A stretch of DNA of 47,058 nt from positions 9,756,057-9,803,114 of the forward strand of contig OZ199840.1 of the NCBI GenBank assembly GCA_964304625.1. The letters are read 5' to 3'. Each line of letters opens with the position of its first letter. The first letter of the stretch is position 1. The translations under genes were made by a program, and so were the position numbers. The notes beneath the pieces were generated by a model. The model saw only the letters and a list, made by a program, of their open reading frames with translations, did not search any database and was not told where the DNA came from. Below, one piece after another: positions 2,373-41,099 of this stretch. This DNA is from Kudoa neothunni (Eukaryota; Animalia; Cnidaria).

Positions 2373-3362
2373 TATAATCATCAATTAACCTAAAAATATA
2401 AATCTGTTATTCTAAATATATTCAGTTATTAAGCTTCTTATTTTAATACGAACTAAAAAATGAATGCATATAATTATAAATAAATTGTTTTATAAATATA
2501 GTCGGAGCTAAATCATCAAGATAGAGTTTTTAATAAAATATAATAAAAATAATTAGAGTTAATATGTCGTTGGGGTTTATTTTATTATTTTATATCTATT
2601 TCCGATAAAGATCAATGTATTCTTTGATTATTGTTAGGCATATTTATTTGTAGAGTACGAAAGTTACTTTTATTTCATTTTCACCGAACTTATCTTTTAT
2701 AAGGAAATATAAAAGCTTTATATTAAAAAATAAGACATCTTATTAAATTAGTAAAAAGATCAATTTCTTGATGAAATTCTAGTTTTATGAAAGCTTCTAA
2801 TCCTTTGTCATTTATAATAAAAACTGTCGTACATTTTTTATTATTGGAAGTATTTACATCTGCAAGAAATTTCTATTCGTCACATATCGTTCAATATGTA
2901 AATGATATTTTTATTATTTAAATAAATCTTTCAAATTATTTATTTATAACTCATCTTTATGTTAATTAAGGAAATAATGTCTAGTCTTTATGTAAATCGA
3001 TCTGCAAGCTGAATTTTGTAACTTACAGAGAATAGTATTATCACTCATTAATTTTGTTTTGTACTATTATTGATATTATTCGTTTATCTATCAATAGTTT
3101 TCACTTCTATTATTATTAATGCTTCATATTTAAAGATAATGAAGCAACCTTATCACATTTGTCTTAATTAATTATAACTGTTGTATAGACAAGAATAATT
3201 TCTGTTGTAACTTTTATAGTCATAATGTTATATAATAAGAATAATCCAATTAATATATCTTTCATTATCTAAAATAAAAATTATCTACAACCCCCCAAAC
3301 ACACAAAATATACTTCTTGAGTCTATTTAAATAATCGATTTAATTCAAACAAATGAGGAATT
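2373..3362 (-). promoter_or_regulatory. Duplicated 5' flank of paralog A (homologous to 9461-10332 and 23285-24300)
   Basis: Alignable non-coding blocks upstream of A, B and C, e.g. TTATCTTTTATAA(C/G)GAAATA.AAAAGC.TTATAT.AAAAAATAA. B/C homology extends ~1.7-2 kb (to ~11180 and ~25260). Regulatory role is inferred only from position. Confidence 0.5.
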
Positions 3363-6396: not shown

Positions 6397-6578
6397 AGAC
6401 GGGTTATAACTTATAACCCAAACTTTCAACTGAAATTAAATAATTATACTTCAAATTAATTTTAATAGAAATATTGGATGAAATAAATAATTATAAAATA
6501 TTCATTTAAATTAGTTATGAATCATGATAAATAATATTATTCATTATCTACTACAAAAAAGAATATTTGTATCATTCT

Positions 6579-9460: not shown

Positions 9461-12400
9461 AATTGCAAATTGGCCTGAAAATATTAATCTGTTATTCTGT
9501 ATATATTCAATTATTAAGCTTCTTACTTAAATATAAATTAAAAAATGAATGCATTCGGATATTATTAACTATTTGTCTATAGTATATATTGTCGGAAAAA
9601 ATAATAATCAATGTAAAGATTGTCAGTAAAGTAATATAATAGCAGTTCCTAACGAAAATTATGAAACTAATTGGATTAAATATGGCATTGGGATTTATTA
9701 TTAATGTTATATTTATTTAAGATAAAGGTTAAAATATTCTATTATTATTTCTTGAGAAGTTTATTTTTATAATGTATAATTATTATATATTCAATTAAAT
9801 ATTACTTATATTATTGTTTTTCCCAATTTATCTTTTATAACGAAATAGAAAAGCTTTATATTAAAAAATAAAGCATCTTATCAAATTAGTAAAAAACATC
9901 AATTTCTATTCGTCAAACATCGTTCAATATGTAAACGATATCTTTATTATTTAAATAAAACTTTCAAATTATTTATGTTTAACTCATCTTTATGTTAATT
10001 AAGGAAATAATGCCTAGTCTTTATGTAAGTCGATCTGCAAGCTGAATTTTGTAACGTATAGAGAATAGTATTATCACTCATTAGTTTTGTTTTATACTAT
10101 TGTTGATATTATTCGTTTACTTATAAATATTTTTCACATCTATCATTAATAAAGCTTCATATTTAAAGAAAATGAAGCAACCTTGTGGCATTTGTCTTAA
10201 TTAATTATAACTGTTGTATAGAGAAGAATAATTTCTATTGTAACATAAAAATTATCTACTACCCCCCCAAACACACAAAATATACTTCTTGGGTCTATTT
10301 AAATAATCGATTTAATTCAAACAAATGAGGAATTATAGCTTAAATGATATCTATGGATTTTTACAAGTTGATATAATATATTGATTTTCCGTAAGGAAAG
10401 CTCTGTTCTAATCTTATTCTGGAAAAATCAGGTCATTTACGACTATAACATCGGCTTTATCTAAAAAATACATATTAAATTTTTTTCTTTATTTAATTTA
10501 ATATTAATTTGTTTTTCTTGAAATTAATCTCAAATTAAAATAACAATAAAATTATATTTTTCGTTTTATGTTAAAAAAACACTTAATAATTTTGAAACAG
10601 AATTTCTGAAAATTTGAAATACAAAAATTACAAATTAAATATAATTAATTTATATTTAATGATTTTCAAATCGGCATCTATTAAAATATTTCCAAATTAT
10701 ACGTATGCAATACAAACATCTCAAACCCACAAGAACAATTCAAATGACTGTTTCCACATAAACCTCACATTAATACTTTTTCGGAATGTTATGTTAGTCA
10801 GCTTTAGATTATCTTAGACAGAAATAGAATTATTCGAATATTTGAAATATATTAATGTTGATTTAAAACAAATATTCTTTATAAATTCCCATTTTTCCCC
10901 AAAAAATATTTTTTAAAGTTTTTAAAAAATTCTTTGATATTAATGAACGTTGTAACGAGAAGATTCAAAACTGAAATAAATTCTTAAAATTATAATTTAA
11001 AGGGATTCAATTAATTTTTGGGCATATATCTAAGATGTTAAATACATAATTTACGTTTTTAATTATCTATTGTAAATATACAAGTTATAGATTGTCAATT
11101 TCGTTCCAAACGTGACAATAGTATAGAAGAGCAATATCATCCAGTCAATCAACAGTTTGAATCAATTGACGTATTATAATTTAGTTTGTTTTGTTAGTTG
11201 CGATTTCTCAGGTACCGGATAATCCGATCGTGATCTGGCTATATCTCAGGTAAAGAATATCTCTAAATTATTTCATCTATTTTATTCATATTTAAATTAA
11301 AAAATAATATTTAATTACCTCAGTTTTTGTAAATTTTAGAAAAATTGGTAGAATAAATTAACAATAATTGAACCATCATTAATTAAACGATAATATATTT
11401 TAATTATCGTATATTTTTTAATATTCCGATAAATAACCAATTTATAAATTATGAAAATCTAGATAATTAAAAAAATATCCTTTTTTTACTCATATCATTT
11501 CGTATTTTAACAAGAAATATAATATATGAAGACTCAAACTAGAGAAGGAGGTATCGTAAAATATAACAGTTATCATATGCAGAAACTGAATTTCATATAT
11601 GATTCCAGTTTTTAGAGTTTATTTATATAATAAATTCTTTTTATGCCTTAATGTTTGTCAAATAACTTTCTCATTGCTTTCCAATTGACTTTAATTTCTT
11701 CAATAGAATTGTGAGGTTTAATATATTCAACAAAAATAATATGTTAATTCTAACTTTACATATATGTTATTCTATGATATTTTTAGATTTATCACTAATA
11801 TTCAATTTTTTCCTATGAGATTCAAAATCATTTTATGTGTCAATGTTTGTCATTTTTATTGGTGAAATGAATATTAAATGAATAGAAGACTTGTAATTAT
11901 CATCATCATTATTTAATGCATTCATGGTTTTAAGAAATGAAGGAAAGCAAATAGAAATCAACGTATATGTGAGGTATTACAACGGAATACAACTATACTA
12001 CAGGCATCGCATAAGGGGATATAGAATCTGAAAGTGAATTCTCACTTGAATTCTTTTATAAGCCTTTTCGGTTGAATCATACCTATAGCAATGTGGTAGA
12101 TTAAATTTTTAACGTGCGATCTGATAAACGCTTACCAAAGAAATTTTGTCACGCGCAAAGTCCTGAAAAATGCAGACGAAAAAATTCAAAATACTTCCAT
12201 AAGCGTATTCAAAGATATAGCAACACAATACAAAGTCACGTTTAAAATTAACGCGTTCTTCTAATCAGGATTTGAGGTTACTTTAAGAATTGGGGTCAAA
12301 TTGACCATGGAATTGGATCGTAATAGCAATAAGACGATAGCAAACGGACATTTTACAAAATGTATTTCTTGGAAAATTTGCATATGCAAGCTTAGCATTG

Positions 12401-12989
12401 ATCAGCAACACGATTTCAGAACAGGTACGTATTTTTCTAACATCCAAGTATGTTAAACAGGAAAAATAGCTATACCTACCATTTTATATTTGTTTTAGAA
12501 ATCCACCCAACTTCTGATCCTATTACAATGCTAGATACTGACAGCATTCTTAAGAAGAAAATAGAGGTTGATATAACACCCCAAGTCACGATTAATGGTC
12601 TCCATAAAATTGGATCAGCAGCATGAAGTATTAGATATTTTTTTGTGATATTAACACAGCACACTTCGAACAGTAAACGAAGCATATAAATCGCATGACC
12701 TACTGTTACATCCAAAAATAAATGTCGGGGATGGAGTTTGTTATTAATTTCACACTCCAAAAAATGGCAAACAAAAGTGTTTCATGTAAAGTTTCTACTC
12801 TTATCGCTTAATGATAATAGAATAACTTTTGAACATACTGCAAAGAATTGGAATAATGTTCCACATAATATTGTAGATATATTCCCAAAAATAGAAACAG
12901 AGACATTGTTTCATATAAATAAATTTGAATGAAATTTATATAAATATTGAATTTAAATAGGCGAGTAAGATCCATAAAGATAAGAAAAT

Positions 12990-15900
12990 GATAGCATAAT
13001 CAATTACTGTAATACCTCCTTATAAACTGTATTTTTGGTCAGACCATTTGGAGAAAAAGAGTATAAATTATGTTTGCAACTTATCCTGGAGAGGACGACA
13101 TACAACTGCCCATGAGAAAAACACGGTTCCTCTTAATATAAACCAGCAACTTTGAAGATTTGTCACTGGGCCTTATTTATGGATATTACAAGATATGATT
13201 TGATGGGAAATTGCAGTCTTTTAAAATTAAAGGCGGTGTCTGAACGAATAATCGGAATATATACATCTTCCCCTCTGGCACAGCCTGTTACGATAACGGC
13301 CTAAATAAGATAAGACATTAACGACTTTACCACTAATCGGGTGCTGTTATACAACCTTGGTGAATCCAAATTTCTTAGCAATATAATTGGAGTGTCTACC
13401 TTTAGGAGAAGTTTGTGTGAAGGAACCCTCGATAGCTCTAAAGTCGAGACTCTAGACCGTTGAGGAATTCAACGGGAAATTAATACATTGATTTTTGTCC
13501 ACAATGGTGTCATATGATTTATACTCTGTAGAGTCGCCTGGAATAAGATGGATCAATCTATCATTGATTTTGTTTACGGATTGGTTTGTGGGGGTTAAGA
13601 TAGCTCGTTCTGACAGTCAATTAGAGTTGTAAAATTTTTGTTGTATTTCTGGAAAAACACGGTTTATCTAATCATCCATGGACGAAATCAAGTTTGTCAG
13701 GGAACATAGAGGTATACATCCGTCGAGCCCAATCGTAAGTTGATCATCACCTATCCGTGGTATTTCTGAAGCGAATTGACTGGTTCCTTCTTTCTTTTCT
13801 GAGTTGCGCTCTCATATTGGTGGTGGGATGGTGGGTTTTAACTCGCGACCATAAGAGAGAGAGCTTTAGGGAATATTTTACTTCGTCATATCTTGTATCT
13901 CTGGGTATTACATGTAAAGTTTGGCGAAAATCGCCTGACAAAACCATTGATTCCGCCATATGGAATGTTTTTGTCTGTTTTATCCCTTATCGTTCTATCT
14001 AAAGCTTTGAAAATCACTCTATTTGCCATTTTGCATTCATCCCATATGATGACCGTGCGTCTGGTCAACAATTAGGACAAACCTGTCCCCTTGCTGATTG
14101 CACATACGATGGTTCCATCATCCTTAATCGCGATTGGCAACTTAAATGTACTATGGGCGGTCCTACCCCCTGGTAATAATGTGGATGCAATGTCCTAAGA
14201 TGCAAAAGCGAGTACAATTTTATATCCCTTCTTAATTAGACAAATAAAAGAGTTGTCACAATTGTCTTATCTATACCACTAGGTGCATCAAGAAAAAAAC
14301 GTTACAATTACCTATATTGTTATAAATACGTATCAACACTGTTTCGAATGCAAATCTTTGGTCAGGCGTCAGTTTCGGCTTGTTTATTTCTATAAAATCA
14401 GATAATTCTTCAGTGTCGTAGGCTAACTCTCTCTGGACTTCGTTTGGAAGAGGGACGCCAAATGTTCCATCCAAAGGAAGAAATCTGTGTGAATTTAACA
14501 TTCCTCCGCTCATTTGAATTAAAGTTCTTTTTGTGTCAATTAGAGCATGTTAAAAATCTCAGAATTGAAAACCTAGTTTGACATTAAACTGTTTTGTTGC
14601 AGTTGATATCAGTAATCTTCCGACATATCTTCTTTAAAAAGTAACCAATGTTTGTGAGGCTGGCGCGTTTCGCAACTTTTGATCAACAGTGCGAATAATA
14701 TTCGTAATTGACGTGGACTGTTTATAAGAGCCGCTTCTCTTAATGTACATTCCCAGTGGTTGTCTCCCTCCATCTAACCATTTTTAATGCACGCTTAAAG
14801 TTATGTTGGGTATAGCTGACCGTTAACCTTCTTAAGATCGTCAAAACTTTTAGGTCCCTTTACACAATGGAGCAACATCCTCAAATAAAAACATTCTTGA
14901 TGTGCAGGGTGTACACTGTAAACTCTTCCTATTGTAGAGTCGAATCGTATGACTGGATGGTCTTCAACTAGACATCGTCTTTTTGTCCAACGCCAACTAT
15001 TATCATTCCATATGTAATAATATGGGGCTTGATGGTAGAGGAGACTTTGAGCGAATTCGTCACTCTGGCATAACTTGAAAAAAGCGGTTAATGGCGTATC
15101 CCTTTGTTTTAGTAACCGATTCAACAAAGTTTCGTCGATGAAATATATACGGTGACCGTTCTCCAAATGGACGCTTAAATGCTCTATGGTTGAAAGATGA
15201 CTATGAATATTGAAGCAGAATAACCTCCAAAATCCTTCGCTACTGCTTATGTAGCGACCAGCCTGGTAATTTGAAACTTTAACCAAACGATCTCTTTGAT
15301 TAACAACAAACATGGCGGCAACAGAACATTTGTTTACATATTTCCATATGTATTTAGTGGACTTGACTGAATGACAATACATTACATAATATGGGCATTG
15401 AAAATCTTCGTCAACAAAGGACAATAAGGAACAATCCAACTATTATCTATGATGACTTCCCTATCTTCAGCTTCAGGTCGTCTTCTTTTGTAAACAGAAT
15501 ATCTATCAGTGTCTGTCTGGGAGAGTTTTTGGTGCATTTTCTCTGATCAATCATGCACGGGCTTTCTGGATTCGACGCACCACAGGGACTATGTACCATA
15601 GTTGTTCTTACAATCTGGAAAAATACTGGATGTACACCTGGGTCTAGTAATTCGCTCAATATGAATTGGTCGATATCATTGGAACACAGTTTCTGTTTCA
15701 TCCAGACCAATATATGAGCGTGTGGCAACCCCATTTCTGCCACTCAATAGTATACATAACACTAAAATTCACCAAAAATCTTCAATACATAAATTCAATT
15801 CATCAAAATTTTAATTACAAGTTGAATACTCTGGCAACTATATCTGGTCTGTCTTTAGGTGCTTGGCTATGAAATAACTCTTCATTAATTTCGCTCCAAA

Positions 15901-17330
15901 ATGGATTTCATGTGAATGTTAGAAATAGATCTGACCCTCCAAAACATCGAACGTAGATCGTGGCATTCTGCATCTTCACGGTCATATAGCGTGATGAAAC
16001 TACAAAAGTCGATGGCAAAATATACAACCGTCCCCGCCTATTTATTTCACCGTCGCTACGATTGCAATTCATTAAATTGATGTAAGATTCAACATGAAAT
16101 TCAAATTGTTTGGTTCTGATGAACCAAAGTCTCTGATTCCATCGTCGCAAGCATGTCTACAGCATATTGTTGGAATAATGTCCAAAACTGATGAAGCATG
16201 TTAAAACTATTTTCCCTTACCATAAAATGAAAAGAATAAAAATCCTTACATGAAACACTTTTGTTTGTGCCAATCTATGGAATATGAAAATAGTAACCAT
16301 CTTGACCATAAACATTAATTAGTGGATATCGCAATACATCATACGATCTGTGTGTTTCGCTTATTCTTTGAAGTCTGTTGTCCTTACTGCTCGAAACAAT
16401 ATCCCTCCTAGATTGCTGCTCATCCGATATTACGATAGCCATCTCATTGTAAGTTGGGGTGTTGTATCTTCTCTCATGTTCTCCCTGTGGACGCTCATCA
16501 GCGTTTATAATTATATTAAAATTAGAGGATGGGTACATTTCTAAAACATACTTAAAACTGTGGATGTAGTTATTGTGACTGTGTAACATATCTTGAAGCG
16601 CTAAAATAATATCATAGCTAAGCTGGGGGTACATGTTGGATCGACTTTGAGCTTACAAATCCATGTCTTGTATGAAATATATTTGCAAGAATTTCGGTTG
16701 CTTATTTTCAGAAGGCGATATCGATCCAATTCGATGACAAACTTGACTGTGAACCTTAAAAATAAGCATGAATCCGTCCCTACTATTTACGTTCACTCCA
16801 AATGATGTTATCTGGAAAGCACAGTTGTATCTTTAGATATTTTGTAGGAAGTGTCTGTAGAATATGAGGAGGAACAGGTAGTGCGTCCAAAATAACCTTA
16901 CCGCCGGCACAACACATATCCGCGAATTCGTTTATTCACTTCTTAGAACGGCATTTTGGGAAAATTTTCGACATTTTCCAAATTGTGATATTCTTTTCAT
17001 TTCCATAGTTGTAGCAGAGGTCGTAATGTAAAGCGACCATATTCCAAGTATCATCAGACATACTTCGCGATTGTTGACCGAATAGAACAGGAGTGTAGGA
17101 AAATTCAGGTACAAATTTACTGCCTGATCATGTGCTGTGCTTATTTATAGGTGACACTGCAGGACTCTGTTGAGTCGCCTCACCTACACGTCGATTTCTA
17201 TTGCTTACTCTATTTGTTTCTCGTATTCGTTCTCTTTGCTCGTCGGTTTCTCGTGAAAAGCGTAAACGTCGGCAATTCCGTCGTAATTGTTGGCGTGTAT
17301 AGTCAAAAATAAGAATAGCTCTGTAAACAA
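12990..17330 (-). pseudogene. Helitron RepHel (HUH Rep + PIF1 helicase) pseudogene
   Basis: Ordered motifs on the minus strand: N-terminal ETDEQRERIR repeat, ISETHRSYDVLRYPL, LYILPSTF, DLFLTFT, GLPHAHIL (HUH), KYIWKYVNK, RYISSSEGFWRLF, ECFYLRMLL, GGRTAHSTFKLP, IIWDECKM, SGDFRQTL, FSHGQLYVVLSR. Many stops and frameshifts; element termini not firmly located. Confidence 0.92.
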
Positions 17331-20262: not shown

Positions 20263-20425
20263 TTAATATGTTTAAACTGAAATTAAATAATTATACTTCA
20301 AATTAGTTTTTATAGAAATATTGGATAAGATAAATAATTATAAAATATTCATTTAAATGGGTTATGAATCATGATAAATAATATTATTCATTATCTACTA
20401 CAAAAAAGAATATTTGTATCATTCT

Positions 20426-23284
20426 TTATTTCTTTCTGTAGGCCATAAAACCTCCTATTCCTCCGATAAGTATAATTGCAACAACAACCGACACTATAAT
20501 ACTAAACGAAAAAATTAAAAAATAACTACTCACATCACATACATTGTTATATTGCCTGACCTATAAAATAATAATTAGATACAAAAATAATTATAAATAA
20601 ATGTACGTTGATTTGCTAGCAGTTGCACCTAAAATTAGAGTTATACAATATTTCTAAGTATTTAAGAATTGGATCACCTTTGTCAATTTCAGCTGTACCA
20701 AATATTGTCCCATCCATGCTGTAGTATACGGTCAAATGATAGTCGTTTAGATCCTCAACATTTTCAATCGTAAAATTCTTACAGGTTGGAAGCGTCGTAC
20801 AATCACCTCCTCCGTTACTCATACATTTTTTAACAGTTGGTCTAGCCACGTCGCTTGAATTAATTAACACCCACATACATTTGGACTCTTCATCTATTCC
20901 AACTGGAAGTAAGGTCGTTACCTGTAATGTTTTATAGTCACGTATTATACTAACAAACAATTTTTTTGTTAGATCAGTTGGGTCTTCAATTATTGGTTCT
21001 AAATTTTATGTTTTAGTAATCGTTAATGATATATAATTTTTAATATATATTGTAAAATAATAACTCGGGGCTAGAATGAAATGAGTTTCTTCAGAACGAT
21101 CAACAGCTGTAACAAAAATTTTATATTCTTTCGAAGCGTCGTAACCTTCACTGAATATAATATTGTTACAATATGGTACTTCGGAGCATGATTTGGTATC
21201 GTTTGATGTAGTTTCTGACGACTGTTCTACTGTACCAGCTCTTGCAATGGAAACTTTTTCGACATTAATTAATGATCCAGCCAATGGTGGTTGAATTGGT
21301 TCTGCAGGACATGAATATATTGTATCCCACGATTCTCCATTTTTAACAGTGATTTTATAATGGCATTTTATGTCACTAATCGGTGTAGACAATTTTCCTA
21401 TCATTTTATATCCTTTGTCCAATGTTTCCTTCGTAAGAGTAAGAGTCGAATAAGCTATCGTATTTATAAAAATAATAGTTCATTCAATTATACTACTCGT
21501 TTTAATACTTGTGAATGTAATAGAACCATATTCTTCATAAGCAACCACTTTAATATCGTAGGCAGTATTGAGTTCGAGGTCAATTAATGTCTTGGACTCC
21601 CTACATAAACCTCTACAAGGATTACTATCTACACATGTTGCTTCGAAAAATTTGTTTATTCCTGCTATACTGACAAAGTAATCACATGTGGGTTCAGTTG
21701 CTTCGGTTCCGGGATCACCGACAATTGCTTTAACTATGCTAGTTGAACCACCCGCAGTAGGTTTTGCAGTATCAAAATTTTTGTCAGTTTTTTTGTCTTA
21801 AATTGTTAATGAATTCGAATATTATGATAATATTGTTACTTGTTTTGACGAAAATATATTCCTTAAAATTTGCATAGTTTGTTATAGTAGTATTAGATGC
21901 AACTACTATCATTATAGGTCGTCCTTCAGGTAATCCTTCAATAGTGCGAGCAGCATTACAATTATTTACACACCCATTCTTTTTTGTACATGTTGGATTC
22001 ATAAATTCATTATTTTTGATAGTATCTGCGACATAATATTTGATTGCACACCGAACAAATCTCGTAGTTTCGCCAGATGGCGCCAATAATGACGCATTTA
22101 AAATGACTCCAGTATCTGTGACTGATACTAGAGCATTTTCATTTCCAGCTGGTTCAATGATGGCTAAAATATAATTAGGTAGTTTATCTAATTATCTATA
22201 CCAAATTTTTTGTATGTAAATCCTTCGAACGATCCACCCTGTTTTTCCGATAAACTATGGTGTCTTCTTTGTACCAATATTTCTACAATTGGCTTTGTTG
22301 AATCAAGAGTGAGTTCTACGTCGTCACAGGGGGCGTAGCATGGTTTTTGGGAACTACCGCAAATTGATGAGTAAACAGGTTTAGGATTTGCTACATCCGA
22401 TGCATCTCTGATACTAAAGTGGCATATTTCATTAGGAATTGGATTCGTAAATTTTAGTTGATATTTGGTTTTATCCTGAGCAGATTTGTATTTAACATAG
22501 AACTGTGGCTTGTAAACGTCTATATTTTCTTTCATATAATAATTTGGCATGTGGTAATAGAAAATAGGATAATCGGAGCATCTCACTTCAAAATACGGGA
22601 TTTTTATTCCATATTCAACAGTATTAATATTATTATTGGCATTAGCTTTACCACAGTCTGCTGCTTTAGGCACATCTTTGTATTTTATTCCTTTATAATA
22701 AATAGGACAAGCCACCGGTTTGCATGTGATGGCTTCCAGTTTTAAATATTTCCGATTTGTGGATGGTTTTATGTTTGGATCAATTAATAATGCTAAATAT
22801 TTATTAATTATTTAATTAAGCTTTTAACTTACGAATTCTAAACCCAAAAACTTTTCCTCCTTTTTGAAGACCCTCTCCTTTAACATTATCGCCGGACGAA
22901 TCATCTTTTATATAAATGTATTTTGATCTGGGTGATAGTTGTGTATATGTAAGCTTATTTTCGGTGCCAACGCACTTTCGTACACATTTACCCTTAACAT
23001 CACTAGCATTATTTACGCATGTTACGATTTCGCTATAATTGTTTCCTTCAGCATTTTCTTGCATTATGCGGCAATGATTCGTTTTTAAGTATTGTGTTCC
23101 TTTCAGTTCGATATGGACTTTATGGGCGTTGATATCGGAATTATCTAACTGATAATAAACTCCTCTTTCAACAGTAGCGTCATCGGAGTAACAAGTAGTT
23201 AAAACTAAATGAAATTCACCAGAATCAAACAGATATTTGTATACGTGAAAATATGATGACCAACGAAAAAGGTTCCATTTTCAT
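20426..23284 (-). CDS. Paralog C, complete 10-exon type I membrane protein (~817 aa)
   Basis: Introns 23205-23244, 22793-22832, 22164-22201, 21797-21839, 21455-21496, 20999-21064, 20629-20677, 20561-20606, 20502-20542. Exon lengths sum to 2454 nt (3n). Signal peptide and TM-RKK end as in A/B. Confidence 0.9.
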
Positions 23285-25086
23285 TATAATCACCAATTAA
23301 CTTAAAAATATTAATCTGTTATTCTAAATATATTCAGTTATTAAGCTTATTATTTTAATACGAACTAAAAATGAATGCATTTTTTTATAAATTGTTTTCT
23401 ATTATAAATATTGTCGGAGCTAAATCATCATCAAAATAGAGTTTATTAATAAAACATAATAAAAACAGTTTTAACGATAATTATAAAAATAATTGGAGTT
23501 AATATGTCGTTGGGGTTTATTTTATTATGTTATATCTATTTCCGAGAAAGATCAATGTATTTTCTGATTATTGTTAGGCATATTCATTTTTATAATGTAT
23601 AAAGTTACTTTTATTGTATTTTCACCGAAGTTATCTTTTATAACGAAATAGAAAAGCCTTATATCAAAAAATAAGACATCTTATCAAATTAGTAAAAAAG
23701 ATCAATTTCATGAGGAAATTCGAAATTTTTGCTAGTTTCTAACCTTACGTCTATTCTCAAAAAGAAATGCTGTAAATTTTTTATTATACTAAGTTTTTTA
23801 CATCTGTATGAGATCTTTATTCGTCAGTTATCGAACAACATATAATAGATATCATTTCTATTCAAATAGATCTTTTAGAGTATTTATTTTAAATCACTAT
23901 TATGATTATTCAAGAAATCATGTTTAGCCTTCCTATAAGGCGATTTGCGAGCTGAATCTAATATAGTAATGAGAACAGTATTATACGAAGTTAAATTTGT
24001 GTTGTTATTTGTTTACCTATGAATAGTTTTGATTTTGAATATGAGCAATGTTTCATACAGAAAAAGAATGACATCGCTTTATGAAATTTGTCTTAATTAG
24101 TTTTAGTTGAAGCACCGAAAATAATAAATTTAATCGTGACTTTTTATAGTCATACTATATCTAATAAGAATAATCAAATTAATTTATATTTCATTATCTA
24201 AAATACATATTACCCACTTTCTCATTCCTACTTTTAGGATATAATAAAATAATGGATGTAATTCCATAAATTATTCAAACAGCTTTCGAAAAAATGTAGA
24301 ATTTTCTTAATAAACATATTAATGGGTATTTATATGTTAATATAATATAACATTTTCAATAATATAGTGGCTAATTCACGCTTTTTCTCTGGTCACAAAG
24401 GGATTATGAATTAGCCGTCACCCACTGCAACAGACCCATTTTAGTCTTAATCTGCAACCATTAGGTCAATTCTTAATATAACATTGGCTTTACCTTCAAA
24501 AAAATACATTTAAACACTTTTATCTTTATAGTTAATTAAACATTAATTTGCTTTTCTCGAAATTGAATAACAACCAAATATACTTTTTATTGTTATTTTA
24601 AAAATGAAAAACAATTTTAATACTTTGAAATAGGCGAACCTCAAACTAAATATTATATTTAATTTATTCTTTAGTAATCAATAAATCCACGCCTATTAAA
24701 ATATTTCTACTTTATATTTTTAGTTATATGAATGCAATACAAACAGTTGGAAAACCACAAGCACAACTCAAATTTCTGTCTATCCATAAAACTCGCATAA
24801 ATATTTATCCATATTGTTATATCAGTCAGCTTTATACTATTTTTGGTAGAAACAGGTTTATTCGAAAATTAGAAGTATATTTGTTTTAGTTTACAAAAAA
24901 TTTAACTTTTATTAATCCCATTTTCTCCAAAAATGGTTTAAATTTTTACAAATCGTTTTTGATAGAACTGATACTTATTTTTATTAAACAAAATGTAAAA
25001 TCTAATATACTTAGTTCATAAAAGATTAAAAATCAAAATAAATTATTAAAATTTTAATTTTGAAATTGTCAATTAAGATTTTTAGC

Positions 25087-26519: not shown

Positions 26520-29428
26520 CTAAAGATATCTAAATCCATGATGTCGCCGGGAAGAAATAAATCCTCCAATTCCTCCAATCAAAAGGATTGCAACAACCAC
26601 CAAAACTACGATACTAAACAAAAAATGTATAAATCAAGGACAAATCAATTTACAGAGTAGTATTTCCTGAGCTAAAAAACAATTAATAATCATAGAATAA
26701 ATACATTAATTAAATTTACGTCGATTTACTCACAGTAGCACCTAAAGTTTAAATCAATACATTTTATATCATAAAATTACCTTTATCTAATTCTGCCGTG
26801 CCGAATATCGTTGCATTCTCGTTATAATATACTATCAATTGATAATCATTCAGATCTTCGACATTTTCTATTGTAAAGCTTTGACAACTTGGAAACGCTT
26901 TACAATCATCATCTGCATTACTCAAACACTTTTTGACTCTTGGTCTCGCCACATCACTTAAATTAATCAACACCCACTTACATTTCGACTCTTGATTAAT
27001 TTCACTGGGTAATATGGTCGCTATTTCTAATGTCTTATTATTGCGCACAATATTAACTATCATTCTTTTCATTGGATCAGTCGGAGTTTCAATTTTTGGT
27101 TCTATAATATATATTTACATTTAATCATTAATAGTGTATTATTTTAAATAAATATATAATAAAAACATATTATGATTATGTAGATAAGAAATATAATGGA
27201 ATTACTTGGGTGTATAAGGATTGAGGATTCCTTGGATCGACCAACAGCCGTGACCAAAACTTTATATTCTTTCGAAGCGTCGTACCCTTCACTGAATATA
27301 ATATCATTACAATTTGTTATTTCAGTGCATGATTTCATATTGTTTAACGTAGATTTTAATTTATGGTTTTCTGTTCTAGCTATGGCGGGACCATTATTAT
27401 TTTTCAACATTGAAGAAATTGTTGAACGAGCCAGTTCAGCAGGACATGAATGGATTGTATCCCATGATTGTTCACTTTTCATAAGGATTTTATAATGACA
27501 TTTTGCATCGTTTTTTGGTGTAGACAATACACCAATAACTTTGAACCCTTTGTCCAGTGTCTCCTTCTTAAGAGTAAGAGTAGAATAACCTACCATTTTT
27601 ATATCTAAATATATTTATCATAAATCTAATACTTGTGTTAATATTATTGTAAATTGTAGAACCAAATCCTGCATAAGCAACCACTTTAAAATCATAGCTA
27701 GTGTTAGGTTCGAGATCAACTAATTTTCGATGTTCCCTGCATAATCCTCTGCAAGGATTACTATCTGCACATGTTGCTTCAACAAATAAATTCCTTCCTG
27801 CTCTGCTTACAAAGTAATCGCAAGTAGGCTCAGTAGGAGATGTTGTTAGTCTGCCGCCGATTGCTTTTATTATGCTAGTGGTGTCGCCCGTGATTAGTTT
27901 GACAGGATTGAAATAGTTTCTATTATTTTTGTCTAAAATAAGAATCAAAGAATTTACATTTACATTAATTCTTACTTGTCTGAACAAATATGTACTCTTT
28001 AAAATCATCGCGGGAAATAATATCATTTTGTGAAATCACTAACATTATAGGTTTCCCCGCAGGTAGTTGTTCAGCTGTGAAGGCAGTATTACAATTAGAC
28101 GGACAATGTGACCCTGTTGAACATTTTGGTGACATGAATACATTATTTTTGATTGTGTCCGCGATGTAATATTTGACCGCACATTGTTGAAATTTCACAT
28201 TACTACCAGCAGGTGCAAATAATGGTAGGTTTATTTTGATCCCTGTTGCTGTATTAGATATAAGTGCATTATCAACTCCAGGCAGTTCAATGATTGCTAA
28301 TATATGATTTAAAATAAATCATATTATTATTTTTACCATATTTCTTATAAGTATATCCATTGGCCGGTTGATCTGTTTTTTCCATTATATTATGGTGCCT
28401 TCTTTGAATAAATATTTCAACAATTGGATTTGTTTGATCAAGAATGAGTTCCACATTATCACAAGGAGCATAGCATTGTTTTTTAATTCCTCCGCAGTTT
28501 GATGAATAAATTGCTGTGTTTGGATCTGCATTATTCGTTCCAACTCTTATACTAAAGAGGCATATTTCACTAGGAATTGAATTAGTGAATTTTAGTTGAT
28601 ATTTGGTTTTATCTTGAGCAGATTTGTATCTTGCATAGAACTGAGGCTTATAAATATCTATATTTTCCTTCATATAGTAGTTTGGCATGTGGTAATAATA
28701 AATAGGGAAGTTAGTGCATCTCATCTCGAAATATGGGATTTTTATACCATAAGTGACTGTGTCTACGCTAGTTCCCTGAGCAGAAATCGAACAACTGCTA
28801 GGTGCTGGCACGTCCTTGTATTTTATTCCCTTGTGATATATTGGACATGCTACAGGCTTGCAGGTGATTGCTCGTAGCTTTAATAAAAAATCTCCATATG
28901 TAGATACAATTATGTTTGGGTCGACCAAAAGTGCTAATAATTTATATTTATTATGAATGAATTAGTTAATTATGATACGTATTGCAAATCCGAATACTAT
29001 TCCTCCTTTTTGCGCACTAGTTCCGCTAACATCTTCAGCATGTACGCTATCTTTTATGTAAATGTATTTAGATCTAGGTGAAAAATTTCTGTACTCCAGC
29101 TTATTGTTGTCTCCAGCACAAGTTCTGACGCATTTGTTGTGAACACCTACCACATTACTTTCACAACCAGTTATTTCAGCAAAATTATTGTTTAAGTCAT
29201 TTTCTCGCATTATACGGCATATTTTATTTGATGTATACTCTGTGCCCTTTAACTCCAAATGAAATTTAATGTTAGAACTATCCAACTGATAGAAAACTTC
29301 TCTAGCAGGTGAAGGTTCTTGCGCCTCATTGGAGTGATAAATTAATGTAACTAAATGAAAATCAATATAATCACGTTGACAGTTTTATTTATACATGAAA
29401 GTATAAATAAAACGATGATTGGATCCAT
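26520..29428 (-). CDS. Paralog D, most divergent copy (~820 aa), tail SSRRHHGFRYL
   Basis: Introns 29351-29394, 28934-28978, 28297-28336, 27933-27975, 27590-27632, 27102-27205, 26742-26780, 26672-26719, 26614-26653 are at the same positions and phases but with diverged sequence. N-terminus MDPIIVLFILSFTLIYHS; TM LIVVLVVVAILLIGGIGGFI. Confidence 0.88.
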
Positions 29429-29718
29429 TTTCACAAGAATCACAAACGATATTAAACAACTTTTATCTACAATTAGACCAGTTCAATTATTCAACATCGT
29501 GACCCATTCAATTTAATCAATAAATTCGTTAATTTATCTATAAAGCTTTGCTGTAATTAATATTCTCGGAAAAATTCATATTGAAGACAATAAGTATTAA
29601 TCTACAACATCAAATATATATTTAGAGATGATAATTATGGTTATAATTTTTGATTACTTTTATAACCCCATGCCGCTTAATTTCAGCTCTATATTTCAAT
29701 TAATAATATATTTACATA

Positions 29719-34399: not shown

Positions 34400-35330
34400 A
34401 ACTTTTTAAACTCAAAACCGAAAAAAATTCGTTCATGTACATTGCATAAGAAATCGAACTAATTTTCAACGAATAAAGAGCGAACAAACCCAGGTAAAAC
34501 TATATTTAAGACGATAACGAGGATCCGCAACACATTTGAAATGCCACGACTAGTAAAAAAATGATAATTTTATTTAATAATTTTTGATGTTGTTTTCTCA
34601 TCATTCAATATTTAAAAATTGTGCTAAGTTGATATTGAGTGAAATAGAGATAGTGGTGCATGCGGAACACTGTTAAATTCTGGCGCCACACACTCCGTGA
34701 TTACCCAGATGTGACTTTAGCGACCTACCTCGCTTTGATCTGATAACGACTGCAAAATCAGCTTCATCTAAAAAGATTATGTTCTCATGTCGTACCGATA
34801 TTTTCAAATTGCGAAACATGTCGATGTATTCTTTCCAGGGTTGATTCACAATTTCTCCTTTCAGGCACGATCACTAGAGTTTTGAGAGTATAGTGAAATT
34901 CATCAATCACTCGATCTATAGTGCTAATAGACACATTTAAATCGAGTTCATCCAAAACCTTTTGCTTGAGCTCCTTTAACGTTATCTTGGAGTTTTCGTC
35001 CATCCATGAAATAATTTTTTCTTTCTGCTTTAATAACGAAATAGAGCGTTTGTCGCCTCGTCTAGGTTTCAGTTCGATGACTCCTGTCTTTTGAAATTTC
35101 GAAATTATTGTGGCCACAGTAGGATAGACCTTGATAACTTGATTTGGGAGGCAATCGCAGTAGTGCTCGTTCCCAAAAGAATAAGCTCATGTCTTTGCTC
35201 CCTTTTACCCATGGAAATCGTCGTCTTTTGCTTCCGTTCCTGCTTGGATATTTGAACAGGAGAAGTTTCATGTTCACAGGGATCTGAATCAGGCGAGCCC
35301 TCGATATTACCATGATGACGATCAATAATT
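34400..35330 (-). pseudogene. Tc1/IS630-like transposase pseudogene 1
   Basis: PRRGDKRS, ITLKELK, VSISTIDRVIDEFHYTLK, PERRN, then frameshifted IIFLDEADF (first catalytic D); C-terminal part decayed. Confidence 0.8.
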
Positions 35331-35589
35331 AATATTACTTAATGTAGCAACTTCTATATTGATACAATATTATAATCAGAAGCTCGGATTTTTTTGGAAA
35401 AATAAATGATAATTTTTTAAAGCAAAAAAAAACTAATCCGCTCCTTAACGTTTAAGAAATACCCAATGATGTCCCATCCTTTTTATGTTTATGTTATGTT
35501 TTTTCATTAAATTAATGCAGTTTATCAAAATTCTAAAGATTATGCTCTACATAATAATGTAAGTAACATTCTGAGTTTTACTAATTGAT

Positions 35590-36596
35590 TGCTTCATCGA
35601 TGTTTTTTTGAGAAGTAGCAAATATCATATCAAAGATGCAATTTCTTATCCATAACATTTTTTATATAATTATAGGGTTTTCTGATCAATATGAGATTTT
35701 CTGCTTCTGCCCTTATAACCAAATTTTTCCACTAGGAAAAAGTATTCTCTGTAGGATTTAGGAACGGATAATACGGTGGCAGGAAAAACAATTTAAATTG
35801 GAATGAGTCAACTGTGTCATTGAGTCCGCTGTAATGATGGATACGTGCGTTATCAAGAATGAAAATCGGATTGTTTATATCCTTGAATAAACAGGCATTC
35901 TTTATTTCAATCAGACATTTTCTAAAATCTTATCATTCATTGCCTTATCGTAAATTTTGTAATATATCATGCCATATTTATTCATAACAGACACAACCGA
36001 AATACTTCTACTCCAGGTAGAGGAAACAGAAAGATAAGGCAAAACCCTTCTTGCCGAACTGCCTCTTTTCGGTCATGTCACCACCGAAAACCCTACCTCG
36101 TCCATAAATATGAAGGTTTTATCCTCTTTCTCCAGCTTATATCCTCTAAATTTTTTAGCATATTTGAATCTCGTTTCAACCGTGGATTCACAATTTCTTC
36201 TTTGGGAATCGGAACGGCAGATTTTATTGTGTATTGGAAATATCGGATAATTCTGTCAACTGTACTTATGCTGACGGAGAGTCCAAACTTTTCACTGATT
36301 ATTCTGATGATATCGCTCAGTCTCAGCAAACAATCGTGGTTAATTCAAATTTCTAATTTTTGATCGTAAGATAACTTAGACTTCCCTTCACCTCCACGTT
36401 TCTGAATGTTTACAACATCATTTCTGTTGTAGTTGTCGATTATTCTCCAAACGGACTTGTAGTTAAGTGAAAGATTTTCAGAGATCTGTTTCGCCGATAT
36501 TCCTTCCAACGATTTGTTTATGATTTTTACCCTATCATCATCGTTAATGCTTACCTTGTTTTTATTAGGTTGACTATTACCAGAATTAAATTCCAT
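35590..36596 (-). pseudogene. Tc1/IS630-like DD34E transposase pseudogene 2
   Basis: HTH region with KRGG, VSISTVDRII, FMDEVGF, FILDNARIHH...FLPPYYPFLNPTE (34 residues between D and E); internal stops and frameshifts. TIRs not identified. Confidence 0.88.
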
Positions 36597-37035: not shown

Positions 37036-38212
37036 TGCAACTTTTATAAAATACACGAGGTTATAATAAACCAAATAATAAAATTCGTTAAATTTATCCA
37101 CAGGCGACCTTCACAACCTCTTTTATAGCGTCTCCATATTTGGTGGTCCCTACATTTTTTATCCCCGGTATAAAAATAATGGTTGAACAAAATTTTATCG
37201 CATCCGCGTTTTGTTTGGAGCTTGACGAATGAGTTTTCATTTTTTTCCATGTTGAAGATTATACACCCACAGCCATATGTGAACTAAACGCGCATGAAAT
37301 AATATCACCGGCGAGTGCGGAGGAATCGCCAAAAATTCGCCGTATGTTTCCCTCTAATAACAATAAGATTCGTGTACTTAAAGTTTATTCCTGCCATCAA
37401 ATCACATTATTTTAACTAATATAAATTATTTCGAATAAATAATAATTTAAGGTATTCTTACATAATAAAACACACTTCATTATTTTTTTATCTCGCTTTA
37501 ACTATTGATTACTAAATATGTTGTGTATTTAATACCACTTAAAATATCTTTAGTATTAAATATATTTACTTTTACAATATGTTGGCATTGGAATTGAAAA
37601 ACTATAATAATTTTACTAATAATTATTGAAAACAATTATATTAATAATTTAAGCGACGAAGAAAATATTAAATAAAACTTTCTTAAGTCGATACTTGTAA
37701 AGTCGGCCTTATAATAAGTCTAGTTGACATAATAAATTACACAACAAAAATTGTAACCAATTCATTATTTTATTATATTAAATATAATAAGGTTAATCTT
37801 CAAATTTTCAAAATATTTCCATCTGGCTGCACAAATAAACCTTATGAATGTTTATTAAAAAGATTTAAACTGTTAATCATTAATAAAAGATGGCTAAGTA
37901 CATATTTATTGGCAATAAACTTGTAATTTTTTACTTATTTTTATAATATTTCATCACGATTAATATTATAATAATAATAGAAAGTATTAATTAGGCTAGT
38001 ATAAAATATTAAATGAAATATTAATTAAAATGTTTAACGATGAGCGATAAACTAAATTTTTAAGTAAACATAAATAGGAAGACTTGGAATTAGTTTTTAT
38101 AGAAATATTGGATAAGATAAATAATTATGAAATATTCATTTAAATTATTTATGAATCATGATAAATAATATTATTCTTTATCTACTAATAAAATGAATAT
38201 TTGTATCATTTT

Positions 38213-41099
38213 TTATTTATTTCTGTAGGCCATAAAACCTCCTATTCCTCCGATAACTATAATTGCAACAACAACCGACACTATAATGCTAAACGAAAAA
38301 ATTAAAAAACAACTACTCACATCACATACATTGTTTTATTGCCTGACCTATAAAATAATAATCACATAAAAAAATAATTATAAAATAAATTTACGTTGAT
38401 TTGCTACCAGATGCACCTAAAATTAGAGTTATACAATATTTCTAAGTATTTAAGAATAGGATTACCTTTATCAATTTCAGCTGTACCAAATACTGACCTA
38501 TCCCTGCTGTAGTATACGGTCAAATGATAGTCGTTTAGATCCTCAACATTTTCAATCGTAAAAGTCTTACAATTCGGAAGGGTCGTACAATCACCCCCTC
38601 TGCTACTCAGACATTTTTTAACGGTTGGTCTAGCCACGTCGTTTGAATTAATTAACACCCATTTACATTTTGACTCCCCATCTATTCCAACTGGAAGTAT
38701 GGTCGTTATCTGTAATGTTGTATCGTCACGTACTATACTAACAAACAATTTTTTTGTTAGATCAGTTGGGTCTTCAACTATTGGCTCTAAATTATATTTT
38801 TTAGCAATCGTTAATGATGTATAATTTTTAATATATATTGTAAAATAATAACTTGGGGCTAGAATGATGGAAGTTTCTTCAGAACGATCAACAGCTGTAA
38901 CCAAAATTTTATATTCTTTCGAAGCATCGTAACCTTCACTGAATATAATATTGTTACAATATGGTACTTCGGAGCATGATTTAGTATCGTTCGATGTAGT
39001 TTCTGACGATTGTTCTACTGTACCAACTCTTGCAATGGAAACATTTTCTACATTAATTAATGATTCAGCCAATGGTGGTTGAATTGATTCTGCAGGACAT
39101 GAATATATTGTATCCCACGATTCTCCATTTTTAACAGTGATTTTATAATGGCATTTCGCGTCACTAATCGGTGTAGACAATTTTCCTATCACTTTATATC
39201 CTTTGTCCAATGTTCCCTTCGTAAGAGTAAGAGTCGAATAAGCTATCGTATTTATATAAATAATAGTTCATTCAATTATTGTACTCGTTTTAATATTGGT
39301 GAATGTGGTAGAACCATATTCTTCATATGCAACCACTTTAATATCGTAGGTAGTATTCGGTTCGAGATTAATCAAGGTCTTGGGCTCCTTACATAAACCT
39401 CTACAAGGATTACTATCTGAACAAGTTGCCTCCACAAATTTATTTTTTTCTGCTATACTGACAAAGTAATCACATGTGGGTTCAGTTGTTTCGGTTCCGG
39501 GATCACCGACAATTGCTTTAACTATGCTAGTTGAATCACCTGCAGAAGGTTTTTCAGTATTAAAATTTTTGTCAGTTTTTTTATCTTAAATTAAAGATGA
39601 ATTCGAATATTATGATAATATTGTTACTTGTTTGGACGAAAATATATTCCTTAAAATCCGAACTCTCATTTATATTACTTTTGGATATCACTAACGTGAC
39701 CGCTCTTCCGTCCGGTAAACCTGTAACCGTGTAGGCAGCGGTACAAACGGTAGGGCAATCGGTACCGCTACCTGATGTGCAAGTTGGAGCTTTGGTATAA
39801 GTATTTCTGGTAGTATCGGCATGGTAGTATTTAATTGCACATTGAGTAAATCTTTCGGTATTACCTGATGATGCGAATAATGGCAAATTTATTTTCACCC
39901 CTGCGTCCCCCACTGTTATTAATGCATTTTCGTTTTCATTTGGTTCGAGAATGGCTATTAAAGTATTAAAAAAACTATTATTTATTATTTTTACCAAATT
40001 TTTTGTATTTATATCCTTCAAATTCTTCGTTTGCATTTGTTGCTAATTTGTGGTGTCTTTTCTGGACCAATATTTCAACAACTGGCTTTGTTGGATCAAG
40101 TGTGAGTTCTACGTCGTTACAGGGAGCGTAGCATGCTTTGTCATTCTGCTCGCATTTTGAGGTAAAAGCAGATGGTTGTGCAGGTGTAGCACTCGACCCA
40201 TCCCTGATACTAAACAAGCATATTTCACTAGGAATTGGATTCGTAAATTTAAGTTGGTATTTAGTTTTTTCGGTTTCAGATTTATATCTAACGTAGAATT
40301 GTGGCTTGTAAATGTCTATATTTTCTTTCATATAATAGTTTGGCATGTGGTAGTAGAAAATCGGGTAATCAGTACATCTTACTTCAAAATATGGTATTTT
40401 TACGCCGTATTCCACTGCGTCATCATCATTTCCACTTGCAGAAGTCAAACAGTTTTCTCCTTGAGGCACTTCTTTATATTTTATTCCTTTATAATAAATT
40501 GGACAAGCCGCTGGTTTACAAGTTGTGGCTTGTAACCTCAGTAAATAATCGTTATGCGTAGATGCCCCTATGTTTGGATCCACCAATAATGCTAATAATT
40601 CATTAATAATGGAAAATAGACAACTATCATACGTATTGGTAGACCAAACACTTTGGCTCCACTTTTAACACCACCGTTTTTTAGGCCGTCTGCGGATGCT
40701 TCATCTTTTATATAAATATATTTTGATCTGGGTGAAAGCTTGTCGTAATCATGCTTATTATCAACCCCAGCACAAGTTCGGATACACTTATTATTAACAT
40801 CACTCTCCTTACCTTCACATGTGTCTATTTCTTCGTAGTTGGTACCCAATGAATTTTCTCGCATTATGTGGCACTTTTTACTGTTTTCATAATCCGTTCC
40901 TTTCAACTCGATATGAAATTTAAAATTGGCGACAGTGGCCTCATGTATCTGATAATACACTTCTCTAGTAGGAGCAGATGCTGAAGCGTCAGCTGAGTAA
41001 CATTCATTCGAAACTGAACAATAATTACTAAGTAAAAGATATAATTAATTTACGTGAAAATATAATGAGAAAAATGTGAAGAATTATATTCGGAGCCAT
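38213..41099 (-). CDS. Paralog E (~825 aa): divergent N-half, A/B/C-like C-half
   Basis: Introns 41014-41053, 40592-40632, 39955-39994, 39585-39627, 39243-39284, 38787-38852, 38417-38465, 38348-38394, 38289-38329; exons sum to 2478 nt. N-terminus MAPNIILHIFLIIFSLSNECYS; ends TM-RNK-stop. Confidence 0.9.

Follow-up and report, generated by a model that had tools for sequence, protein, structure and literature searches.

In the major histocompatibility complex (MHC) class I and class II B genes of vertebrates, the membrane-proximal exons, introns and 3′ ends of tandem paralogs are homogenised by interlocus conversion, and the distal ligand-binding exons represent old, divergent lineages which exchange only short patches. 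Hybrid genes of the primate KIR and LILR families are the product of unequal crossover or domain shuffling in tandem arrays, and for KIR a crossover is supported by co-transferred flanks and by copy-number haplotypes. A variable outer part combined with a conserved inner part is also characteristic of Giardia VSP, Plasmodium var and trypanosome VSG, the last with segmental conversion. Here we describe gene E of the cnidarian parasite Kudoa neothunni, a member of a tandem array of paralogs for putative surface proteins, within a window of 47,058 nucleotides (nt), this being the whole stretch of DNA that was analysed (C3:9756057-9803114, i.e. positions 9,756,057 to 9,803,114 of contig OZ199840.1, assembly GCA_964304625.1). 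Window coordinates are used throughout, and copies located beyond 1-47058 lie in the flanking contigs. Gene E was compared with the A-, B- and C-type copies of the array (A/B/C), with the D copies and with two further copies of its own type, E2 and E3. We estimate a probability of about 80% that E, E2 and E3 are recombinant mosaics, in which an old, type-specific head is carried on a stalk that was recently shared with A/B/C.

Two histories in one gene

Gene E is intact and comprises 10 exons and 825 codons, according to a model based on sequence and on paralog conservation. Its parts are as follows.

38213..41099, minus strand: gene E
41099-41054, 41013-40633, 40591-39995 and 39954-39628, minus strand: exons 1-4
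39584-39285, 39242-38853 and 38786-38466, minus strand: exons 5-7
38416-38395, 38347-38330 and 38288-38213 (including the stop codon), minus strand: exons 8-10
39658..41099, minus strand: E-type head, with the signal peptide and modules 1-4, stopping 30 nt short of the exon 4 end
39651..39658, minus strand: junction, the support interval of the maximum-likelihood breakpoint between E and C
38095..39657, minus strand: shared stalk tract, which takes in the final 10 codons of exon 4, all of exons 5-10 with introns 4-9, and some 120 nt of 3′ flank
39285..39584, minus strand: exon 5, the first stalk module, with a modelled FN3-like fold
38213..38288, minus strand: last exon, with a membrane helix predicted from the sequence, IIIVSVVVAIIVIGGIGGFMA, then the tail YRNK and the stop

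In 100-nt windows the identity of E to A/B/C was 52-80% from 41100 to about 39660, with a single conserved block of 85-86%, and 81-98% from about 39650 to about 38100 (86-98% against the best copy for each window), the latter position being the end of homology for all copy pairs, including B-C and C-Z. A two-rate maximum-likelihood model placed the E-C breakpoint at 39657, with a 2-unit support interval of 39651-39658 (8 nt) and a likelihood ratio of 298, mismatches amounting to 31.8% on the head side as compared to 7.2% on the stalk side. The junction falls within a module exon, exon 4, 30 nt upstream of its 3′ end, and in the alignment the switch occurs at the first base of a conserved block encoding ...FKEYIFVQT, the last strand of module 4. 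A Logan contig of another copy matches E to 39657 and diverges exactly there. Synonymous divergence (dS; Nei-Gojobori) between E and C falls seven-fold across this position, from 0.96 in exons 2-4 (non-synonymous divergence, dN, of 0.30; dN/dS 0.32) to 0.14 in exons 5-7 (dN 0.065), and dS between E and the A/B/C copies is 0.14-0.19 in the stalk. Non-coding sequences are divided in the same manner, introns 1, 2 and 3 of E and C being 64, 63 and 65% identical, as compared to 91, 93, 94, 96 and 93% for introns 4 to 8, while the 200 nt before the ATG are 59% identical and the 130 nt past the stop codon 92%. A first-pass annotation of the window had described exons 1-4 and introns 1-3 of E as strongly divergent, and the gene from about 39660 to about 38090 as close to A/B/C, introns included, and had proposed sliding-window identity, dS and a breakpoint test near 39660 as checks; the values obtained from these analyses bear out both descriptions. 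Divergence is not uniform along the gene, as silent-site and intron values both shift at the junction, and such an abrupt change in the silent-site divergence of a single paralog pair is the pattern by which interlocus conversion is recognised.

Intron 4 of E had been recognised as C-type, in agreement with an identity of 91% to C/C2 and of 74% to B. The extent originally assigned to this intron had to be corrected, since it measures 43 nt (39627-39585) and the next 45 nt, down to 39540, are coding; the AG at 39540, on which the earlier extent relied, is missing in the A/B/C and D copies. In copy B, introns 4 and 5 (window 7600-7990, with exon 5) are of a separate variant, at 74-79% identity to C and E, and introns 6-8 of B are 94-100% identical to C and E, so that the start of the most homogeneous zone varies among copies.

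Copy D serves as a control from within the array. It is 68-69% identical to every other type over its whole length, its introns are 51-76% identical throughout, and dS between C and D reaches 1.26 for the head and 0.95 for the stalk. As the D stalk has reached a dS of about 0.95, the stalk is not intrinsically slow and its silent sites are free to diverge. The proposal that the two halves of E have different histories is upheld by this comparison, since silent sites, introns and the 3′ flank of E all shift at the junction and those of the D control do not, and selection alone cannot explain the two-part divergence of E. The dN/dS of 0.27-0.32 between the heads of E and A/B/C indicates that the difference in the head represents old divergence under purifying selection, with no adaptive burst. 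D takes no part in the homogenisation although it is located inside the array, and the rare differences between D and D2 (0.9%, i.e. 99.1% identity) are Poisson-like.

Separate maximum-likelihood trees of head and stalk included four copies from other loci as outgroups. The head tree is a four-way polytomy between the E, ABC and D clades and one copy on contig C1, with stems of 0.21-0.34 (0.24 for the E clade) and an E-C path of 0.58. In the stalk tree the E and ABC clades are joined with a support of 100/100 on a stem of 0.20, and within this group the reciprocal monophyly of E-type and A/B/C-type stalks is supported at 98/98 and 97/97, the two being about 7% apart, with clade stems of 0.021 and 0.024 and path lengths of 0.087 for E-C and 0.080 for E-C2. 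Approximately unbiased (AU) tests on the stalk rejected the groupings E+D (p 2e-4), E+G1 (p 6e-11) and ABC+D (p 2e-4), and the same tests on the head rejected none of E+ABC, E+D and E+G1. The conflict between head and stalk is one of depth and not of branching order, and because the head topology does not reject E+ABC the case for exchange rests on the depth of divergence at silent sites. The first-pass annotation had called the stalk homogenised, a term which is too strong for its present condition, as the E-type and A/B/C-type stalks form separate clades and their homogenisation is not continuous.

The introns of E are all of the GT-AG type, 40-66 nt in length, and in phase 1 after exons 1-7, and E, E3, B, C, C2, D and D2 all retain an open reading frame. 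The earlier count of ten exons holds only if an 18-nt micro-exon (38347-38330, minus strand) is included, which is situated inside the 106-nt gap before the last exon, between introns of 47 and 41 nt, and the splice signals of which are also kept in the divergent D copy. Translation of gene E predicts a signal peptide at the N-terminus, then an ectodomain with cysteines, and at the C-terminus a membrane helix with a tail of four residues. As the signal peptide is N-terminal and the membrane helix C-terminal, the divergent half would be distal and the shared half membrane-proximal, which is the layout that had been proposed for this gene, and the same two elements suggest that the proteins of the family are located at the cell surface.

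Later exchange among the copies and a family-wide boundary

E3 is 95% identical to E over 3.45 kb, and E2 is 93% identical to E. Head and type of junction are common to the three copies, as are about 45 E-type diagnostic sites in the stalk, such as 39596-39594, 39554, 39449-39430 and 38575-38572; the first-pass view of E as a chimera was therefore correct in that the mosaic is real, but E is not singular. Since all three carry both the mosaic and the diagnostic sites, the mosaic event would appear to predate the multiplication of the E-type. In this genome only E3 (92%) and E2 (88%) carry the E-type head besides E itself, and the match that ranks after them is at 70-72%. No donor of this head with more than 72% identity is present elsewhere in the genome; in the absence of any closer relative there, the E-type head was not assembled from extant donors.

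At its diagnostic sites E2 is E-like to about 39713, carries A/B/C alleles from about 39710 to 39541, and is of the E-type again from 39449 to 38061. The A/B/C-type tract of E2 is at least 160 nt in length, straddles the older junction and has C2 or C as its nearest copy, at 94-97% identity. Being bounded on both sides by E-type sites, it is a conversion tract and is later than the main junction. Where one of E, E2 and E3 differs from the other two, the sites form blocks of 50-150 nt, and the differences are over-dispersed, with a variance/mean ratio of 3.5-5.7 as compared to 0.9-1.15 for D/D2. The odd alleles in the heads of E, E2 and E3 were found in other copies at 138 of 235 sites, where 85 were expected under random change (P < 5e-5).

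Two further clusters of the family present the same profile, namely nine copies at C1:16.44-16.53 Mb (cluster 1, on another chromosome) and seven copies at C3:8.69-8.76 Mb (cluster 2). Mean pairwise identity in cluster 1 is 73-85% in the 5′ half and 86-97% in the 3′ half, the corresponding values for cluster 2 being 58-79% and 74-87%, and the minimum is in exon 4 in both. In cluster 1 the jump in identity falls within the final 30 nt of exon 4 and coincides with the junction of E, which is therefore a family-wide boundary and not one private scar. The head introns of cluster 1 are 84-88% identical and thus exceed its head exons (75-85%), which is the opposite of the neutral expectation and suggests that selection or exon-focused change, in the form of exon-directed diversification, adds to the contrast between head and stalk. 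Exon 4, which is the most variable exon in these two clusters also, is a candidate hypervariable module. Between C and C2 the dN of exon 4 (window 21841-22161 in C) is 0.14 and exceeds the dS of 0.05.

All array copies are on the minus strand, and are positioned as follows.

Positions -7036 to -3730, minus strand: paralog Z
Positions 1-2650, minus strand: paralog A, the 3′ end of which is lost in a scaffold gap
Positions 6413-9700 (approximately), minus strand: paralog B
Positions 20271-23500, minus strand: paralog C, with C2 the A/B/C-type copy nearest to the E stalk
Positions 26557-29446, minus strand: paralog D, the internal control, not homogenised
Positions 38090-41099, minus strand: paralog E, of which gene E itself occupies 38213-41099
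Positions 51090-54488 (C3:9807146-9810544), minus strand: paralog F
Positions 64776-68324, minus strand: paralog C2
Positions 71070-74220, minus strand: paralog D2
Positions 82681-86132, minus strand: paralog E2
Positions 99199-102644, minus strand: paralog E3

Between B and C, a run of open reading frames at 12476-16634 (minus strand) was recognised by eye as a Helitron/PIF1-like helicase, and open reading frames between D and E, at 34785-36596 (minus strand), were similarly recognised as helix-turn-helix parts of a Tc1/mariner-like transposase.

The assembly analysed comprises 40.26 Mb in four contigs of 17.15, 12.04 and 11.05 Mb and 18.2 kb. The published K. neothunni assembly, of 40.2 Mb with an N50 of 12.0 Mb, a GC content of 30.4% and a median intron of 49 nt, consists of three chromosomes and a circular mitochondrial genome, and was recovered from sequencing data of its yellowfin tuna host, with limited coverage (PMC12239612). 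Haplotypic duplication is mentioned in the same paper, which also reports only a very small number of host transcriptome reads mapping to the parasite (PMC12239612). The window coincides with a single 47-kb contig, flanked on either side by a scaffold gap of 200 N (window -199..0 and 47059..47258). Window positions 2759-47058 are 98.5-100% identical, outside genes, to the first 44.6 kb of the next contig, whereas identity between the two 44.7-kb copies of the locus is only 87-93% in the heads of B/F, C/C2 and E/E2. The homology dovetails across the scaffold gap, extending from the start of one contig to the end of the other. A recent segmental duplication was considered for this repeat; given the contig layout it may instead be an unmerged haplotype overlap, with E2 the other haplotype's E rather than a duplicate, and the pair was not relied on as a clock. 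On both readings the heads have undergone about ten times more change than the sequence around them, and this in patches. F differs from B by about 30 one-base insertions, nearly all of which are in homopolymer runs, and E2 has two frameshifting one-base indels, again in homopolymer runs. Copy Z, too, carries frameshifts. As the indels of F and E2 look like consensus errors, pseudogene calls in the contig that carries F and E2 are unsafe, and it is doubtful that either copy is a pseudogene.

Origin of the mosaic and rival explanations

The mosaic was produced by recombination between tandem paralogs, which as a process is ordinary and well known, and it is both well delimited and statistically overwhelming. 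The head, with its signal peptide and modules 1-4, would represent an old lineage with a dS of about 1 from A/B/C and from D, as these have from each other, and the stalk would have a much younger common ancestor with the A/B/C copies (dS of about 0.14). The two were probably brought together when tandem paralogs misaligned and underwent homologous recombination, ahead of the multiplication of the E-type copies, and we consider long-tract ectopic gene conversion likelier than crossover. Exchange may start in the well-matched 3′ half and halt at the first strongly mismatched stretch, the hypervariable module 4. Such a mismatch block would keep the stalk recombining and the heads refractory, and would exclude D (68% identity everywhere) altogether; it would explain the same boundary in other clusters as well as the non-participation of D. 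Exchange on a smaller scale appears to have continued, as seen in the E2 tract and in head patches of 50-150 nt which often carry the alleles of other copies. The first-pass annotation had attributed E to unequal crossover or long-tract conversion, of which recombination between paralogs stands. The 3′ end of the main 1.56-kb tract coincides with the end of all paralog homology, however, and as the tract runs to that limit crossover and conversion are not separable for the main event.

A number of observations weigh against this reconstruction. The head data are compatible with an E+ABC clade, and topology alone is no proof of exchange. No extant copy qualifies as the donor of the main tract, the E and ABC stalks being reciprocally monophyletic. 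This tract is not demonstrably two-sided and may be the product of a crossover. Within the stalk dS is higher in exon 5 (0.20-0.30) than in exon 6 (0.09), which would point to two or more events, or to a mixed history. Among the odd head alleles of E, E2 and E3, 97 of 235 match none of the eight other copies. The contig of E2 contains homopolymer errors and is possibly of the other haplotype, which weakens the timing of E versus E2. Finally, short contigs from the assembly's own source sample are all the read support that the junction has.

The alternative that survives best is that the transfer took place in the reverse direction, i.e. that the ancestor of A/B/C received its stalk from the E-type lineage, in which case A/B/C would be the chimera. 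The reciprocal monophyly of the stalk clades, their near-equal stems (0.021 and 0.024), the lack of a polarising outgroup and the unresolved head tree are all compatible with this direction. There are, on the other hand, six A/B/C-type copies versus three of the E-type, and stalk diversity within A/B/C is comparable to the distance between E and ABC. Copy number and stalk diversity slightly favour A/B/C as the older holder of the stalk, with nothing decisive, and we regard reverse transfer as unlikely, though a real contender.

Rather improbable, in our estimate, is a single unequal crossover between an E-type and an A/B/C-type gene, which would have generated one hybrid that was later duplicated, the shared boundary being due to coincidence or to selection on domain integrity. 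The sharpness of the junction (8-nt support), its presence in both E and E3, the uninterrupted shared tract to the end of the repeat unit and the separation of the E-type and ABC-type stalks into two clades are as one event would predict. A crossover should also have brought along the downstream flank of the donor, and the flank of E below about 38090 matches no A/B/C flank; this objection is weak, as the A/B/C flanks do not match one another either. Further points against a crossover are the conversion directly seen at the same junction in E2, the same boundary in cluster 1, which better fits a recurrent process, and the uneven divergence along the stalk.

It is very improbable that the junction is an assembly artefact, created by a contig which switches paralogs inside the shared 1.5 kb so that head and stalk of E are not truly joined. 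The origin of the assembly from host data with limited coverage (PMC12239612), the position of the window as a 47-kb contig between scaffold gaps and the homopolymer errors of the neighbouring contig would be compatible with such an error. Read evidence was available as short Logan contigs of the assembly's source sample, and none of these bridges the junction by 31 nt on both sides. An exact 162-nt Logan contig (39629-39790) nevertheless runs from the E head into the shared block, with 28 nt on the stalk side of the junction, and stops at 39629, as would in our reading be expected if these contigs are built from 31-nt words, all of which are shared beyond that point. In addition, three copies on two contigs have the same architecture, the approximately 45 diagnostic sites of the stalk tie it to E-type heads, and the gene, at 3 kb, is expected to be much shorter than HiFi reads. 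Scarcely credible, lastly, is the absence of any exchange, with E and A/B/C as plain sisters whose heads evolved faster by diversifying selection on a constrained stalk: the head tree does not reject E+ABC, and the excess divergence of head exons over head introns in cluster 1 and of dN over dS in exon 4 of C-C2 indicates that selection or exon-focused change acts on heads, but synonymous sites (0.96 vs 0.14), introns (63-65% vs 91-96%) and flanks (59% vs 92%) shift together, the E-C head is under purifying selection (dN/dS 0.32) and the stalk of D is free to change at silent sites (dS 0.95).

The gene family and comparison with known systems

Database searches were made exon by exon and not with the spliced protein. 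Exon 5 matched the Pfam family fn3 at 20.7 bits, below the cut-off of 25, and Pfam gave no match for exons 2, 3, 4, 6 and 7, with none above threshold for open reading frames and single exons. An AlphaFold2 model of exon 5, from 24 paralogs, had a predicted local distance difference test (pLDDT) score of 87, and a Foldseek comparison with PDB returned nearly exclusively FN3 domains or monobodies, at template modelling (TM) scores of 0.5-0.67 and weak E-values of 3e-3 to 3e-2. The exon 5 module is accordingly best described as a modelled, FN3-like fold that matches solved FN3 domains at modest scores. For exon 3, in the head, the model (pLDDT 59) was too poor to search, and look-alikes in the ESM Atlas, at scores of 0.87 or less and in bacterial Ig-like clusters, were treated as non-informative. 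An exhaustive, profile-free HMMER search of the exon 6-7 frame against 1.84 billion representative proteins yielded 13 proteins, 12 of them unnamed metagenome fragments of short length and the other a bacterial protein with FN3 repeats (E 4e-4), and returned no named relative. Fibronectin-like families are not mentioned in two myxozoan genome papers (PMC12239612; bioRxiv 10.64898/2026.02.11.705288), and the family seems to be undescribed. With at least 164 matches to the stalk reading frame in the genome of approximately 40 Mb, and with a signal peptide, helix and four-residue tail in translation, it has the features of a large, diversified and putatively surface-anchored family. Its copies are found in internal tandem arrays and are under purifying selection overall (dN/dS 0.2-0.5).

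The locus contributes a mapped junction at a family-wide boundary, an in-array control in D and a later conversion tract across the junction, with two deeply diverged head types on one young stalk, and represents a clean, dated example of evolution in a very large, seemingly undescribed family of putative surface proteins of Kudoa. The pattern in this family is one in which outer halves persist as deep lineages with short-patch exchange and inner halves are repeatedly shared, the boundary being fixed. For questions of expression and host selection the locus offers probes specific to each head type, the mapped junction and, in D, a control paralog that does not participate. Some myxozoans are reported to show antigenic variation, the molecular basis of which is unknown, and VSP-like genes of myxozoans have been discussed in this context (bioRxiv 10.64898/2026.02.11.705288). 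By analogy with antigen and receptor families, to which E had been likened at the outset, the proteins described here might have a role as variable receptors or antigens. It is a speculative idea, to which we give little credence at present, that the homogenised 3′ half acts as a recombination handle which moves head cassettes among the loci of a variant surface-protein repertoire. Were this so, a cnidarian parasite would generate diversity of antigens or ligands by way of conversion; the E-type genes would be a fixed product of that route, and the patchy differences between E and E2 a sign that it is still active.

Among the systems introduced above, MHC class I and class II B genes resemble the E array in their homogenised proximal part and in their old distal lineages with short-patch exchange. 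The Kudoa family, which is myxozoan and consists of FN3-like modules with four cysteines each, is unrelated to MHC, and has no sequence or fold relationship to VSP, var or VSG. Unlike in MHC, the Kudoa boundary is not at an exon border but inside a module exon, 30 nt before its end. The KIR and LILR genes share with the Kudoa family a type I membrane topology, an arrangement in head-to-tail arrays, and hybrids in which the outer domains of one lineage are combined with the stem, membrane and tail regions of another; in contrast to KIR, no co-transfer of flanks is demonstrable at E, and E2 carries a two-sided conversion tract across the junction. The likeness to VSP, var and VSG is one of organisation, as the Kudoa genes also constitute a large parasite family in which a cysteine-bearing ectodomain is followed by a single membrane helix and a very short conserved tail, and in which exchange between paralogs has given rise to mosaics.

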